Below are positions 14,059 through 19,343 of a stretch of 64,000 nucleotides of DNA, one piece after another. The DNA comes from Chlorokybus atmophyticus (lineage: Eukaryota; Plantae; Mesostigma and Chlorokybus algae). Position 1 is the first letter of the stretch. Every line of letters begins with the position of its first letter. Below the pieces are notes generated by a model. It worked only from the letters and a program-made list of their open reading frames with translations, searched no databases and was not told the DNA's origin. Where the stretch lies: assembly GCA_009103225.1 (NCBI GenBank), contig RHPI01000026.1, positions 192,936-256,935 on the forward strand, read 5' to 3'. Position numbers and translations under genes: made by a program.

Positions 14059-17000
14059 TTACGCTACAGCATAAGCAGGGGTTGGGCGCTGCGTTGACGC
14101 ATACTTCCTTGTTATATACCTGGACCAAGCACCAAGCCATGCCAACATCAGCATCATAGCATGGAATCACAGAAAGGACACAACTAGGACACAACTATGC
14201 ATGACAAAAGACCCTACCGGAAGAAATCGCGCCACAGCAGCTCAAACACAAGCCAGTTCAGCCCTCCTCTGTTGCTGTCTTCAGCAGAGGATGCGACTGC
14301 GCCGCCGGCTGCCTTCAGGTCTTCGTACATCCTTCGGGGAGAGAGGCAGCCCATGGCCAGCCATGGCGATATCTTGCACGAGAAGTTAGCGCCATACTGC
14401 TTGTCAGCGGCCAAGCTGTCCTTGGCGCCACGCATGGCACTGACAGCATCAGCCACAAAAGTGCGAAGGCGTTCTAGAGCCTCTTTCTCCCCTCCAATCA
14501 GCGAAGGGGCTCCTGCGGTGTCCTGGTACAGCATGCTGCCAAGCGTGAGTTTGCGTTGCTGCATACGATAAGGCGCAGTCATCGCTGATGGTTAAAGCAC
14601 CAAATTCAGTCACGCATCCCGTCATGTGGACAAGACTCACAAGCGGGAACTGTTACTTTATCATCACTGTTTCTTGTTGGTGTGTGCATGCCTACATGAC
14701 ACTTCGCCACCAGCAAAGTACCTGACCAACGGATGTTGAAGACAGGCCAAGCTGGTCCAATGTAGGAATGTCTCCCAACTCAAGAGATCCTTGGGCAGGA
14801 AGCCGTTTCAACTCGGCGACTGGAACTGTCTTCCTGATGGCAACGTTTTGCACCTGCTCGCGGAAGGCGCCATAGTTCGATGGCATGTCATTCAGCTTGA
14901 ACGGTAGATCATCCAAATGGTAGAGCGTGCTGCCCCAAGAAGCCTTGAACTCCACGCCAATCTTCTTGAGGACGGCTTGCACCTGATGTTGATTGGCAGT
15001 TACAAGCGTGCAGAGGTAGACCATGCCAATGACTGCCAAACCGCGGGGTGAACTTGCAACAATTACCTGTTCCTCTGCTTGCACATCCTCACGTGTGACT
15101 TCCTGGTGAGTGTACACAGCCTCAGCTCCAACCTGGCAAGGAAACAATTCAAACAAAAAGAACTCCAAGCGAATTGGAATTGAAATTTGCATAAACTGTC
15201 AGGGACGCTGCCCACGATGAACAATGCTGCCATGAACCATCACATAAACAATATTTGCTCGTGTAAGTGACATTACAAGAGACAAAGAAGCCAATGGCCC
15301 CTCACAACTACAATACTGACGCTGCAATGTGTACTGTAGCGTAAAGTTGTGTGCACATGATAGCAAACTACAACGTGTGACTTTGCAAATTTGACCCGCA
15401 TCTGACCTGGCGCCTTGATGCACCACAGCCATGATGCGCGACTAACTGTTGCTGAAAATGACTTACTTGCTTGGCAATGTCTGCCAACACCTCTTCAGGC
15501 TTGCCAATACGCACGACAAGGTCGGTTCCATGCTGCTGCAGGCTTGCGCGCAAGTCTGAGACACACTCGCGCAAAAACTTGGCTCGATACGGGCCGGTCT
15601 TGTCAAAACCGGAGGCAGACTTGCCATAGTCCCGTGGGTCGAATATATACAAAGGTACTACAGAAGAGGCCTCCTCATTCGCATGCAGAAAGGCCTCATT
15701 GTCATGGACGCGCAGGTCGTTGCGGAACCACGAGATGACAGCACCACGCATGCCTCCAGCACCGGGAGGACGCCTGCTCTTGCGGCCACTGCACAGAGCA
15801 ATAGCACCAGCATGCTTGCTTAGAATGCGTGCGGCTTGACATGGGCAGGCTAGTAACTAGGTGTTTGGGTGGTTGATGCAGCTAAGGTGTGATAGCATAC
15901 GAAACAATACTTTGGCTTTTGCTGATGACTCACGCAGGAGTGTGTTTAGGGTTACGACTCATAGCATGTCACTTACCTGTCCTTGTCAAGAGATAGGTCG
16001 TTGAACAGAGAGATGTTGGCTTGCTTCAACTCGAAGCTTGGTTTGTCCATTGTCAGCGCTGACACGGTGGCAAACTTCACAGATAACGACGACATGTTGG
16101 CCACTGCTGAGTTACCAGCAGACTTGCTCGGCATGCTGGGTGCTTGCTTCTTTACAATCTGCTGCGCAATGGATGCCTTCAACTTGCTCGCTGGTGCACG
16201 GATAGCGCTTGGCGCACCCAAAGACCGTGATGCCAGCGACATGGACGCAAATGGCAGCGCAGACGCAATGGCACAGAACTGCGGCTGAACTGCCAAGGCG
16301 GAAACCTCTTGTGCGCACGAAGTTGGAGCACTAACAACGGGTGCCAACTGAATGTTAGCAGTGTGCTTGGGAGCGGCAACTTGTGCAGCACAAAGCTGAG
16401 CGCTCTGCATGCTGCGCATGTTTGCGTCCATGACCATGTTAAACTGGGAGAAAGCGGCAGAAGCTGGGCGCTGAGCTCGCAGATCAACGCGTTTCGTGAC
16501 CATGAATCTGGTGTTGTCCGCACCCTGCGCAGTGAGGGCTTCATGGAGCTGAGCGGCATCCTCCGCGACACTCAACATGGCTGGAGGCTGCTTCCGCAGA
16601 CAAGTGGAGCAAGCTGAAAAGATGCGCAACTGCAACAACAAGCAAGTGAGTAGGACTGCGACTGTGTTACACAACTCCAGCATTTAGAAAGGTTTACGAA
16701 CTTAGTACTCAATACTTGTGTAGCAAGTACACATCGTGCACTTGCATACAACCGGTCACTCATGCATTTGCCTCACCTGGAGCGCAGACAGCTGCTCAGC
16801 AGCCTCCTCCTGTGTCATGCTATCAGCGTCAACAACGAGCACTGCCTTCTGCCAGACCCGCTCTCCAAATGCACGGCTGATGCCGTTGATCACATTCTCG
16901 TTGCTATCAGCAAGGGAGCATGCAATGACGACCGCATCAACAGCTGTCTTTCGCCTGCACAGATCGTTGGCAACAGCAGCGACCTCCGCAGCAGTTGTGA

Positions 17001-17451
17001 GCTGGCCAGCCGCCAGAACAGTCGCGCCATCTTCCGCTGTGTGCAGCTGCAATTGCCCCTGGCTGACACTCTGCAACAAAAACAGATGACTTTGGCAGGT
17101 GTGTGAGTGTGTTTGCAATCAAAGCAGCGGCGGCCAGCATCCAATGCACATCATGTCAACAACATGCACAACATGTCAACAACAAACAGAGCACACTCTC
17201 ATCTGAGCATGTGCTTCCGAAATGGTGTGCTCAATATCAAAATCACAACCTCATCGACTTGCGTAAACACCGTGCAGGCAAAGGCCAGAGTGCTGCATAG
17301 ATGAAGCGCAAGCTGACTCCATCAACTACTCCGCTGTGTGACGCACCTGCGCAGGCTGCTTGCCGAGGAGAGCGCGCACGGCGCCGGTTGTGTCCGCGCA
17401 CCCAGCGCCGAGCACGAGGGCGCTGCTGAGCTGGGCCTCCCGCAGCGCCAT
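14059..17451 (-). CDS. PHR2: PHR2-type photolyase/cryptochrome-family protein with an N-terminal degenerate TOC34/AIG1-like G-domain (fusion model)
   Basis: VISWFRNDLRVHDNEA...FDPRDYGKSASGFDKTGPYRAKFL, WGSTLYHLDDLPF, GANFSCKISPWLAMGCLSPR, LNWLVFELLWRDFFRYITRKY then an early stop (TAA 14059-14061), the truncated-C-terminus PHR2 pattern. Upstream exons 17451-17347, 17070-16777 and 16629-15977 join in frame to the exon starting at 15788. Confidence 0.85.
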
Positions 17452-19343
17452 GACGAGCGACACCGACGCCAATGCCAACGACAGCACCGCCGCAGCACAC
17501 CAGCACAGCCAACAGCAGGAAACCATGCGGATGCTTTTCTGTGACGCAAACAGCGTTGATTACAGCTGCATACTTCTGAACACGTTCAATTACAGCTCAA
17601 GACACACCAGATAACGATGATATCTTCCTGCACTCTCTTTTTTGTAAGGATATCTGCTTTCTAGATACATACTAGCCGTCTTGTTTCACACGGGGTGCCG
17701 GCGTGGACAGCATGGCGGAGGTGGGAGGCGGCGGCGGTGCCGGCGATGGTGATGGGGAAGCTGGGAAGGCGCAGAGGGAACCCGGTTCCACGGTTAGGAA
17801 GCTGGTGCAGCACCTGGACGCGTTCCGGGGCGCCAGCGTGGAGGAGCACAAGTCCTGATTGAAAAACACCCTGAGCAAGGTGCATGCCCTTCGCGGAGTT
17901 GCGCACAACCTGTTGCTTCACACACGCCATGCATGAAAACTTACAGCTACGCGGCAAGTACACAAACATTAATTATCGCAAGCATGCCCAGAGATCAGCA
18001 TGTGTACGTTTGGGTGCACCTTTGTTTTGTTGATTGCCTATCAATACATCATTCCATGTTATCTTGGTTGCTGTATTGGTACTCATGTTCTGCACTAAAC
18101 CTTTGGGCGTTTGTTGTGATTGGTACAGCTGTTCAACCTTGGCAAGGCAAAGCCAGTAAAGAAGAAGGGGGACGTTGTGCCGCACGTCCACAGTGTGCTC
18201 AGGATCAGGGCGCAGCGCGGTTTGCAACAAGTAAGCAGACAAGCAACTTTACATTTTGACATCAACATGTAGCTTGTCGTCTTATTCTTTCTTCTGTAGT
18301 CTCGCATCTTGTCTATCGTCCCTCTCTGCTGTCGTGTCACAACATGCATGACAACTGCTGCCAAAGGACAGGCTCTGTCAGTACACACCATACACCTGTG
18401 CTGCCCAACATGTACGGCAGGTTGTTACTCACACTGCTGCTGTTGTACTCAGGCTAAGCATTCATGACATCTGCTTCCTATTCGCGGTTAGAATTCGTGA
18501 CGGACATTCGCCACAACCACTGATTGTGGAGGCCATGACCTGATACTCGGCTATCTGTGGATAGGAACCGCTCGCTAGATTGGACTCTCACTTAATGTAT
18601 TGACAGACTTCTCACGGCGTTGTTGAGACTGAGTCTTGTTCTGAGTAGTAGCACATAACTCGCGTGCAGGGTTGCTGCTCGACGCTGTGTCTGGTGCAAG
18701 TCGGCAATGCTTAGCGTCATGGAAGAGGGCTGCTTGACTACCAAATCACATAATGTACCACTCTGGCAGCCTGCGCAGTTGTGTGAAGCTCTGCTCCTTA
18801 GTGCGTGCATGTATGGCTGCATGCTGTGTACAGTGTCTCAGCACGTGCATAAACGCAATTTGTTCGCGGTTTTGTTGCTCATCAGCGCACTCTTTGAGTG
18901 TCAAGTCGTCATGGCCCAAGAGGGTTTCCAATGTGCGCACAAGGACTGCACAAACTGAAAGAGCTTCAGCCTTCTCGTAAGATGCAGGATACCACTAGCA
19001 TAAAAGGTACAAACATGGATGATGACACAATCAACACCTGCCAAACTAACATGCGACTGAACAGCAATGAGATGCATGAAAACACCTGCTGATACCCAGG
19101 CCGAATGTCACAGTGGGCATGCAGAGCGTGTCTTTGCTTCCGTTCCTTCTGTGCAAGTTGGCATATTTTCCATCCTCAGCTTCTTTGCAGCTTCACAACT
19201 GCCAGACCCAATGCTGTATGCTTTGTACAGCACTGCGCTGAAACAATTAATTGCTGACACTATCTTTGCAGCAGACTAAATCAAATAGCTGGTAGTGGCG
19301 TGTGTGGTATGGCTAAAGATATACGCACTCGAGGTTTGCAACC

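Follow-up and report, generated by a model that had tools for sequence, protein, structure and literature searches.

Why does a photolyase-like protein begin with a segment that resembles the GTPases of the chloroplast import gate? The question is raised by a minus-strand gene of the alga Chlorokybus atmophyticus, located between positions 17451 and 14059 of a 64,000-nucleotide stretch of contig RHPI01000026.1 (assembly GCA_009103225.1; this whole stretch is called the window, and all coordinates refer to it). An earlier note, made from the letters of the window, had proposed that a degenerate TOC34/AIG1-like GTPase domain (G domain) is fused there to PHR2, a protein of the cryptochrome/photolyase family. 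Our profile searches, the matches of the algal family to Toc33 and the predicted fold uphold this proposal. We conclude, with a probability of about 85%, that the gene is the Chlorokybus orthologue of PHR2/PPL (GERALT in Arabidopsis) and that its product carries a TOC-type GTPase fusion which is ancestral in streptophytes, degenerate in Chlorokybus and lost in land plants. The protein is laid out in three parts, a G domain of ~135-160 residues, an Ala/Ser-rich linker of ~200 residues and a photolyase-like core with a truncated flavin adenine dinucleotide (FAD) domain.

The strongest evidence comes from the relatives of this protein. A search with the PHR2 core recovered five long orthologues, comparable in length to the Chlorokybus protein: Mv16955 of Mesostigma viride (P0007, 725 residues), a Klebsormidium nitens protein labelled photolyase/cryptochrome (P0013, 740 residues), a protein from a Klebsormidium-like JGI contig (jgi738, 738 residues), one from Chara braunii (820 residues) and one from a Logan transcript contig of ERR2041121 (lgn754, 754 residues). 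With the Pfam AIG1 model, the Klebsormidium and jgi738 proteins scored above the threshold (39.4 and 39.1 bits, respectively), and those of Mesostigma (24.3 bits), Chara (21.8 bits) and lgn754 (17.6 bits) below it. All of them are collinear with the Chlorokybus protein over a stretch that opens with the first G-domain strand and reaches to the C-terminus. When a profile was built from the five relatives with Chlorokybus left out, it matched residues 10-133 of the Chlorokybus protein with 37.5 bits, a score that none of 1000 shuffles with the same composition approached (8.0 bits at most); although divergent, the Chlorokybus segment thus truly belongs to the N-domain family of algal PHR2. This family in turn belongs with the import receptors, since the six-sequence profile, searched against all PDB sequences, gave Arabidopsis Toc33 as the top match (E 8e-19, 71 bits, ~150 residues aligned), followed by pea Toc34 (3e-15), Chlamydomonas Toc34 (1e-11) and Toc120/Toc90 (5e-7). 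The GIMAP/IAN AIG1 GTPases matched far more weakly, GIMAP7 at 7e-6 and the remaining GIMAPs with worse values. The Klebsormidium domain alone matched pea Toc34 at E 7e-7, and the top NCBIfam match was TIGR00991 (Toc34) or TIGR00993 (Toc159) in all six members. Homology is thus demonstrated in two steps, because the Chlorokybus segment matches the algal family and the family matches Toc33/34.

The same architecture, which the earlier note had suggested looking for in streptophyte algae, is thus found in Mesostigma, Klebsormidium, Chara and another alga. One transcript-like contig (L001, from ERR2041121, 2399 nt) holds an uninterrupted 754-codon reading frame running from the G domain through PHR2, sits on a long unresolved branch in the tree of the cores and possibly stands for an additional lineage of streptophyte algae that has the fusion. 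Among 57 PHR2-like loci in a metagenome scan, the hidden Markov model of the G domain matched only one contig (L004), with a score identical to that of L002, and no new lineage, a result to be read with the caveat that G-domain exons in intron-rich genomic contigs could escape detection. Klebsormidium-like sequences and fragments were all that word-indexed searches recovered, whether started from the Klebsormidium G domain or from the G-domain alignment; no Toc34 or Toc159 was among them.

Comparison with the closest known systems shows where the algal family stands. Its best sequence matches, Toc33/Toc34, are the small GTPases that serve as TOC receptors in the outer envelope of the chloroplast (PDB 3BB3, 2J3E, 3DEF, 1H65 and 3BB1), with which it has in common LVLGxxGxGKS, the hydrophobic box ([IV]D[VL]xLYVDR in Mesostigma and Chara) and FGxx[IL]WxKA. 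Unlike these receptors, the PHR2 domain has neither a membrane anchor nor an arginine finger, the G3 motif of the family is ExxG, and Chlorokybus has lost G3 and is in addition devoid of G1 and G4; the scores of the family with the model of Toc34 proper (TIGR00991) are far below the full-length cut-off. The Toc159 family (Toc159/132/120/90; TIGR00993; PDB 7VCF_F) is part of the same AIG1/TOC clade, and the Mesostigma domain scores higher with the Toc159 model (43.5 bits) than with the Toc34 model (29.7 bits). However, the algal PHR2 proteins have no A domain and no M/beta-barrel domain, and their G domain is located at the extreme N-terminus of a soluble-looking protein. On the other side of the fusion, Arabidopsis PHR2/PPL/GERALT (At2g47590) and its land-plant orthologues have an orthologous core (55-61% identity) with the PF00875 domain, the truncated FAD domain and the PPL motifs in common, but they are ~440-590 residues long and start after the G domain.

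Taken alone, the Chlorokybus domain gives faint signals. The Pfam AIG1 model (PF04548) matched it with 13.0-15.8 bits (E 0.009-0.066; best match, E 0.0089 at 15.8 bits), and its sole NCBIfam match was TIGR00991 (Toc34), at E 0.15 and 11.1 bits against a full-length cut-off of 421. The PDB sequence search with Chlorokybus alone was non-significant (E >1); Arabidopsis Toc33 accounted for four of the five best matches, the alignments consisting of two collinear patches, one at the P-loop and one at FGxxIWxK (AtToc33 residues 131-160). In an ESM-feature search, clusters of AIG1/MMR_HSR1 held all ten top ranks with a score of 0.91, although 0.9 is reached by 4-10% of shuffled proteins. No second Chlorokybus sequence was found among the protein-database cluster members.

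The fold of the N-terminal domain was predicted with AlphaFold2 (AF2). The model based on the six-sequence alignment (predicted local distance difference test, pLDDT, 75.4; predicted template modelling score, pTM, 0.74) shows the beta-alpha order of a G domain, and the same order was obtained in a single-sequence model, which with a pLDDT of 52 was used for secondary-structure order only. The top Foldseek matches of the AF2 model were Toc33/Toc34 (E ~1e-5, TMq ~0.59), and the VIA alignment to Toc33/34 covered 151-155 residues at 3.0-3.2 Å with a Z score of 12.2. A match to the P-loop GTPase fold, on which the earlier note had made its reading depend, was thus obtained with Toc33/34 on top, and a G-domain (TRAFAC GTPase) fold is predicted to be present in Chlorokybus.

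Which parts of a working GTPase does this domain retain? The G1 motif or P-loop (GxxxxGK[ST]) is intact in all five relatives (GxxGxGK[ST]; GPAGAGKS in Klebsormidium and GKSGAGKT in Mesostigma), in contrast to Chlorokybus, where GAGCADTT shows a Gly to Ala and a Lys to Asp replacement; the alignments therefore confirm the loss of the P-loop GK[ST] that the earlier note had claimed. Its second claim, the loss of DxxG, is borne out as well, with one correction. The G3 motif (DxxG in general, DTPG in Toc34) is AAGQ in Chlorokybus (within VLAAGQL), with both the Gly and the acidic residue gone, but the relatives already have the non-canonical E[AC][SE]G. For G4 (THxQ in Toc34, NKxD in classical GTPases), Mesostigma has THTE, the other relatives are variable and Chlorokybus has DADS. 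The hydrophobic box, as defined in PMC12845241, is retained, AVDAVVIAC of Chlorokybus aligning with AVDVVLxV of the relatives and IDVLLYV of Toc33/34, and in Mesostigma and Chara the box is followed by the TOC-like YVDR. Chlorokybus also keeps the buried strands and FGERVWQKAV. The identity of the G domain between Chlorokybus and its relatives is 19-29% (29% with Mesostigma), compared with 28-33% among the relatives themselves, and the identity of the core is 58-64% in all pairs except Klebsormidium/jgi738. Judged from these values, the Chlorokybus G domain is only modestly more diverged than those of its relatives. The known concept that lies nearest is the pseudo-GTPase, a G fold devoid of nucleotide motifs.

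The remainder of the protein is PHR2. The photolyase alpha/beta domain (PF00875) was recognised with 147.3 bits (E 5e-43), and the three PPL motifs defined by Deppisch et al. 2022 (PMC9498864) are all present, ppl1 as EEASSVVPLYIFDPR, ppl2 as KQYGANFSCKI and ppl3 as FFRYITRK, together with the truncated FAD domain; the protein ends 14 residues after ppl3, like its orthologues. The best matches of the core are all PHR2 proteins (50-61% identity over 94-100% of the core), and in the core tree Chlorokybus is paired with Mesostigma (83/96), as expected for orthologues.

The linker between the two parts was compared in an N-terminal alignment that took in 18 PHR2 proteins. In Chlorokybus, it contains three motifs that recur in the PHR2 orthologues, FSQFNMVMDANMRS (16452-16411), LPFASMSLA (16257-16231) and ISLFNDLSL (16014-15988). 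PHR2 proteins of bryophytes, lycophytes, ferns and gymnosperms start at [DE]LExIMDxN, a motif common to the PHR2 orthologues except those of angiosperms, which in the algae is located just after the G domain and has FNMVMDANM as its Chlorokybus counterpart. A-S-[LI]-S-L is common to all 18 proteins, angiosperms included, except two short Spirogloea models, and LPFASMSL of exon 3 aligns with it in land plants, as the earlier note had recognised. SAFPD[FY]xxL is found just before the core in most of the aligned proteins. No G domain is present in the land plants or in the two Spirogloea models. The note had further described the N-terminal extension of land-plant PHR2 as low-complexity sequence; the G domain is indeed absent there, but the extension is the conserved linker left after the loss of the G domain, which explains its origin. 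As for the two models of Spirogloea muscicola (P0015 and P0056, 395 and 435 residues), they start ~50-65 residues before the core and retain only SAFPDFQRL, so that either these models are truncated at their 5' end or, in the Zygnematophyceae, the G domain has disappeared along with the greater part of the linker.

Since the fusion is common to Mesostigma, Klebsormidium, Chara and another alga, the fusion is ancestral and its degeneration specific to Chlorokybus. The fusion announced by the earlier note is consequently real without being peculiar to Chlorokybus, of which only the degeneration is characteristic. In the simplest history that the sequences suggest, the streptophyte ancestor would already have had the fusion, which Mesostigma, Klebsormidium and Chara retained, whereas it would have degenerated in Chlorokybus and been lost towards land plants; Spirogloea apparently also lost the G domain.

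In the searchable literature (the subscription-only literature being outside this scope), no description was found of a pseudo-GTPase fused to a protein of the cryptochrome/photolyase family, in agreement with the earlier note, which knew of none. No paper combining photolyase and AIG1 was found there, and combinations of PHR2 with TOC terms gave nothing relevant. The GERALT preprint (10.1101/2024.08.16.608208) and the surveys of the cryptochrome/photolyase family (PMC9498864, PMC4564169) make no mention of a GTPase domain or of these algae, nor does the 2026 survey of plant AIG1 proteins (PMC12845241) mention a PHR2 GTPase domain or these algae. Nevertheless, the precomputed Pfam annotations reveal the architecture in the models from Klebsormidium and Mesostigma. 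The fusion thus unites two known families in a domain architecture that, although contained in public data, is apparently new and so far undescribed, and of which the Chlorokybus protein is a pseudo-GTPase member. With it, TOC-type G domains extend beyond the Toc34, Toc159 and IAN architectures of the plant AIG1 survey. The fusion also concerns PHR2/PPL, the least understood branch of the cryptochrome/photolyase family, and links it in an unexpected evolutionary way to the TOC machinery, both GTPase receptors of the import gate having a G domain of this type. Moreover, intact P-loops (Mesostigma, Klebsormidium, Chara), a pseudo-GTPase (Chlorokybus) and the absence of the domain (land plants) form a natural series that can be used to probe the role of the domain.

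Several points weigh against the reading of the segment as a degenerate TOC-type domain that still serves PHR2. The assignment in Chlorokybus is a transitive homology which passes through just five relatives, the domain itself scoring below every curated threshold (27 bits for the Pfam gathering threshold). With exon 2 alone, phmmer returned from 1.84 billion representative proteins only the self-match, besides one spurious protein. The AF2 model depends on a shallow six-sequence alignment, and VIA ties Toc33/34 with Arf, EF-Tu, Rag and eIF2-gamma (all at Z ~12); as the structure cannot separate Toc33/34 from other GTPases, the TOC-specific assignment rests on sequence. In the alignment, the arginine finger of Toc34 (R130/R133) is conserved in no member of the family; the C-terminal membrane anchor is absent from the whole family, which has the linker and PHR2 instead, and G3 is ExxG even in the relatives that bear a P-loop. 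These features make a canonical Toc34-like mechanism unlikely, and the whole family of PHR2 G domains may be an atypical, perhaps slow or non-hydrolysing, nucleotide binder. As to function, the absent arginine finger weakens a role in TOC contact, and land plants, having lost the domain, demonstrate that the PHR2 core is able to function in its absence. The spurious phmmer match, a protein of 666 residues (P0002) with six weak matches to exon 2 (E 2e-5), was rejected as repetitive and rich in Ala, Ser and Val, its likeness being driven by composition and its appearance that of a translated repeat.

The main rival, which we consider unlikely but worth serious attention, takes the Chlorokybus G domain for a functionless relic decaying on its way to loss, the protein working through its linker and PHR2 core. 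The loss of all three testable G motifs agrees with it, as do the land plants and Spirogloea, which keep PHR2 without the domain, and the position of the Chlorokybus domain as the most divergent member of its family (19-29% against 28-33% identity). However, no disruption of frame, splice phase or beta/alpha hydrophobic pattern is seen across ~135 codons and two introns, the identity to Mesostigma (29%) nearly equals that between members bearing a P-loop, and neither the score of the five-relative profile nor the confident fold prediction would be expected under long neutral decay; in addition, the transcript contigs cover the domain at full depth. Even as a mere relic, it would document cleanly how a domain was gained, degenerated and was lost along the streptophyte lineage.

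If, as we prefer, the domain is a retained pseudo-GTPase, what could it do? Arabidopsis PHR2/GERALT is a stromal protein without a predicted transit peptide, needed for chloroplast biogenesis, cotyledon greening and plastid-encoded-polymerase transcripts (10.1101/2024.08.16.608208). Having lost G1, G3 and G4, the Chlorokybus domain is predicted not to bind GTP; if functional, it would be a nucleotide-independent pseudo-GTPase, that is, a fixed-state module for interaction or dimerisation on PHR2. TOC GTPases act through the pairing of their G domains. Our preferred guess, one that we would still rather bet against than on, is an interaction of the Chlorokybus domain with TOC-type G domains or with other partners at the envelope, which would fit the role in chloroplast biogenesis and the stromal location of land-plant PHR2 in the absence of a predictable transit peptide. 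Such functional propositions are much less certain than the identity of the protein and its evolutionary reading.

A more far-reaching proposal, which we regard as quite doubtful, makes the TOC-receptor-type G domain of ancestral streptophyte PHR2 a built-in module that engages the import apparatus, nucleotide-independent and always docked in Chlorokybus, while land plants would have replaced it by recruiting the former linker as a non-canonical targeting sequence. The module could pair with the Toc34 or Toc159 G domains and so open a route into the plastid independent of a transit peptide, or act as a light- or flavin-linked regulator of import. A linker turned targeting sequence would explain how GERALT reaches the stroma without a predictable transit peptide.

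It is far less probable that the Chlorokybus domain is an active nucleotide-binding switch using non-canonical residues. Some proteins with a GTPase fold do bind nucleotide with atypical motifs, and the Thr-Thr that follows the lost Lys is retained. Nevertheless, Asp stands in the place of the P-loop Lys and Ala in that of the Gly before it, the G3 motif has lost its Gly and acidic residue, and the G4 region reads DADS, all of which speaks against such a switch.

Is the fusion then borne by a single gene? The transcript-supported coding sequence has 688 codons in eight exons on the minus strand, from the ATG at 17451 to the TAA at 14061-14059. Exon 1 (17347-17451, residues 1-35) opens with the ATG at 17451-17449 and encodes strand beta1 of the G domain, the degenerate P-loop GAGCADTT (17409-17386) and helix alpha1. 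Exon 2 (16777-17070, residues 36-133) encodes the remainder of the G domain, including the G3 equivalent VLAAGQL (17019-16999), the hydrophobic box AVDAVVIAC (16944-16918) and FGERVWQKAVLVVDADS at 16869-16819, which spans the Toc34-like FGxxIWxKA stretch and the lost G4. Exon 3 (15977-16629, residues 134-351) contributes the final helix of the G domain, then the Ala/Ser-rich linker. All three are flanked by a GT donor and a polypyrimidine-AG acceptor. They translate without a stop to the peptides reported in the earlier note and, exon 3 ending in phase 2, join in frame to exon 4 at 15788, giving ...DKDS|GRKSRRPPG...WFRNDLRVHDNE; in this, translation and transcript contigs agree. The PHR2 core starts in exon 4 (15465-15788), which carries the photolyase alpha/beta domain of PF00875 with WFRNDLRVHDNE at 15730-15695. 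It continues through exons 5 (15065-15130, joints 15465/15130 and 15065/14980 in transcript contigs) and 6 (14721-14980, in transcript contigs) into exon 7 (14215-14521, with a transcript-supported acceptor at 14521), which encodes the truncated FAD-domain part, with YGANFSCKISPWLAMG at 14396-14349. The coding part of exon 8 (14059-14116), linked to exon 7 by the joint 14215/14116 in two contigs, completes the PPL3 motif FFRYITRK and ends with the stop codon.

The junctions 17347/17070, 16777/16629 and 15977/15788, singled out by the earlier note for transcript verification, are all seen in spliced contigs of two independent studies, with zero mismatches in both: one of 1408 nt (X1, study P1) spans 17452 to 15465, and the other of 2358 nt (X2, study P2) extends from 17468 to beyond 13900 with all seven introns spliced out. 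This evidence leaves hardly any credit to the view that two separate genes or an internal PHR2 transcription start lie behind a fusion that is only apparent, produced by read-through or chimeric assembly. A single molecule cannot be proved from contigs, and a low-depth unspliced fragment exists in intron 4, as that view would have it. However, exact GT-AG joints connect exons 1-4 and exons 1-8 in one open frame, where the earlier note had named transcripts of two separate genes as what would overturn its reading. Five other proteins show the same collinear architecture, which in three cases lies on an uninterrupted transcript-like contig (L001, L002 and L004); the linker motifs bridging both parts are conserved, and a divergent gene starting at 17712 leaves no room upstream for another gene. 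The unspliced fragment itself, a second record of X1 (340 nt, window 15103-15442), runs across the boundary of intron 4 and exon 5 at a depth of 5.3 compared with ~436 for the spliced contig, which suggests a minor retained-intron or pre-mRNA fraction.

Just as improbable is the view that the N-terminal segment is an Ala-rich transit peptide or low-complexity extension resembling Toc34/AIG1 by chance: alanine does make up 20% of the segment, the direct matches are sub-threshold and shuffled proteins can reach high ESM scores, but no same-composition shuffle came near the profile score, the whole domain is collinear with orthologues above the Pfam AIG1 threshold, and the model has a regular beta-alpha-beta topology with a G fold at Z ~12. 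Residues 1-35 were also considered separately as a transit peptide and rejected, since strand beta1 begins at residue ~10 and leaves no room for one.

The public gene model (Chlat1/7101, P0001, 706 residues), in which the N-terminal part is already joined to PHR2, differs from the transcript contigs at three places, the start, the exon-7 acceptor and the last exon (window 17452-17526, 14521-14557 and 14059-14116, respectively). Its start codon is an upstream in-frame ATG (17526-17524, minus strand) that adds 25 hydrophobic codons (17452-17526). This start was rejected because the 5' ends of the transcript contigs, at 17468 and 17452, do not reach the ATG and none of the five relatives has the segment, their starts being level with the Met at 17451; 17452-17526 is probably 5' flank or untranslated region, not coding sequence. 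In exon 7, the public model uses an upstream acceptor and gains 12 extra residues (QRKLTLGSMLYQ). It has no exon 8 and reads into the intron, terminating at FFR, so that the conserved FFRxITxK (PPL3) end is missing, whereas the C-termini of the relatives read FFRFITKKYG....

On the upstream side, the divergent gene is a small plus-strand gene at 17712-18559 of the window, which begins with MAEVGGGGGAGDGDGEAGK... and has its start ~260 bp upstream of the PHR2 ATG. As it starts at ~17712, exon 1 is the 5' end of the PHR2 gene, and a single, very short bidirectional promoter must serve both genes.

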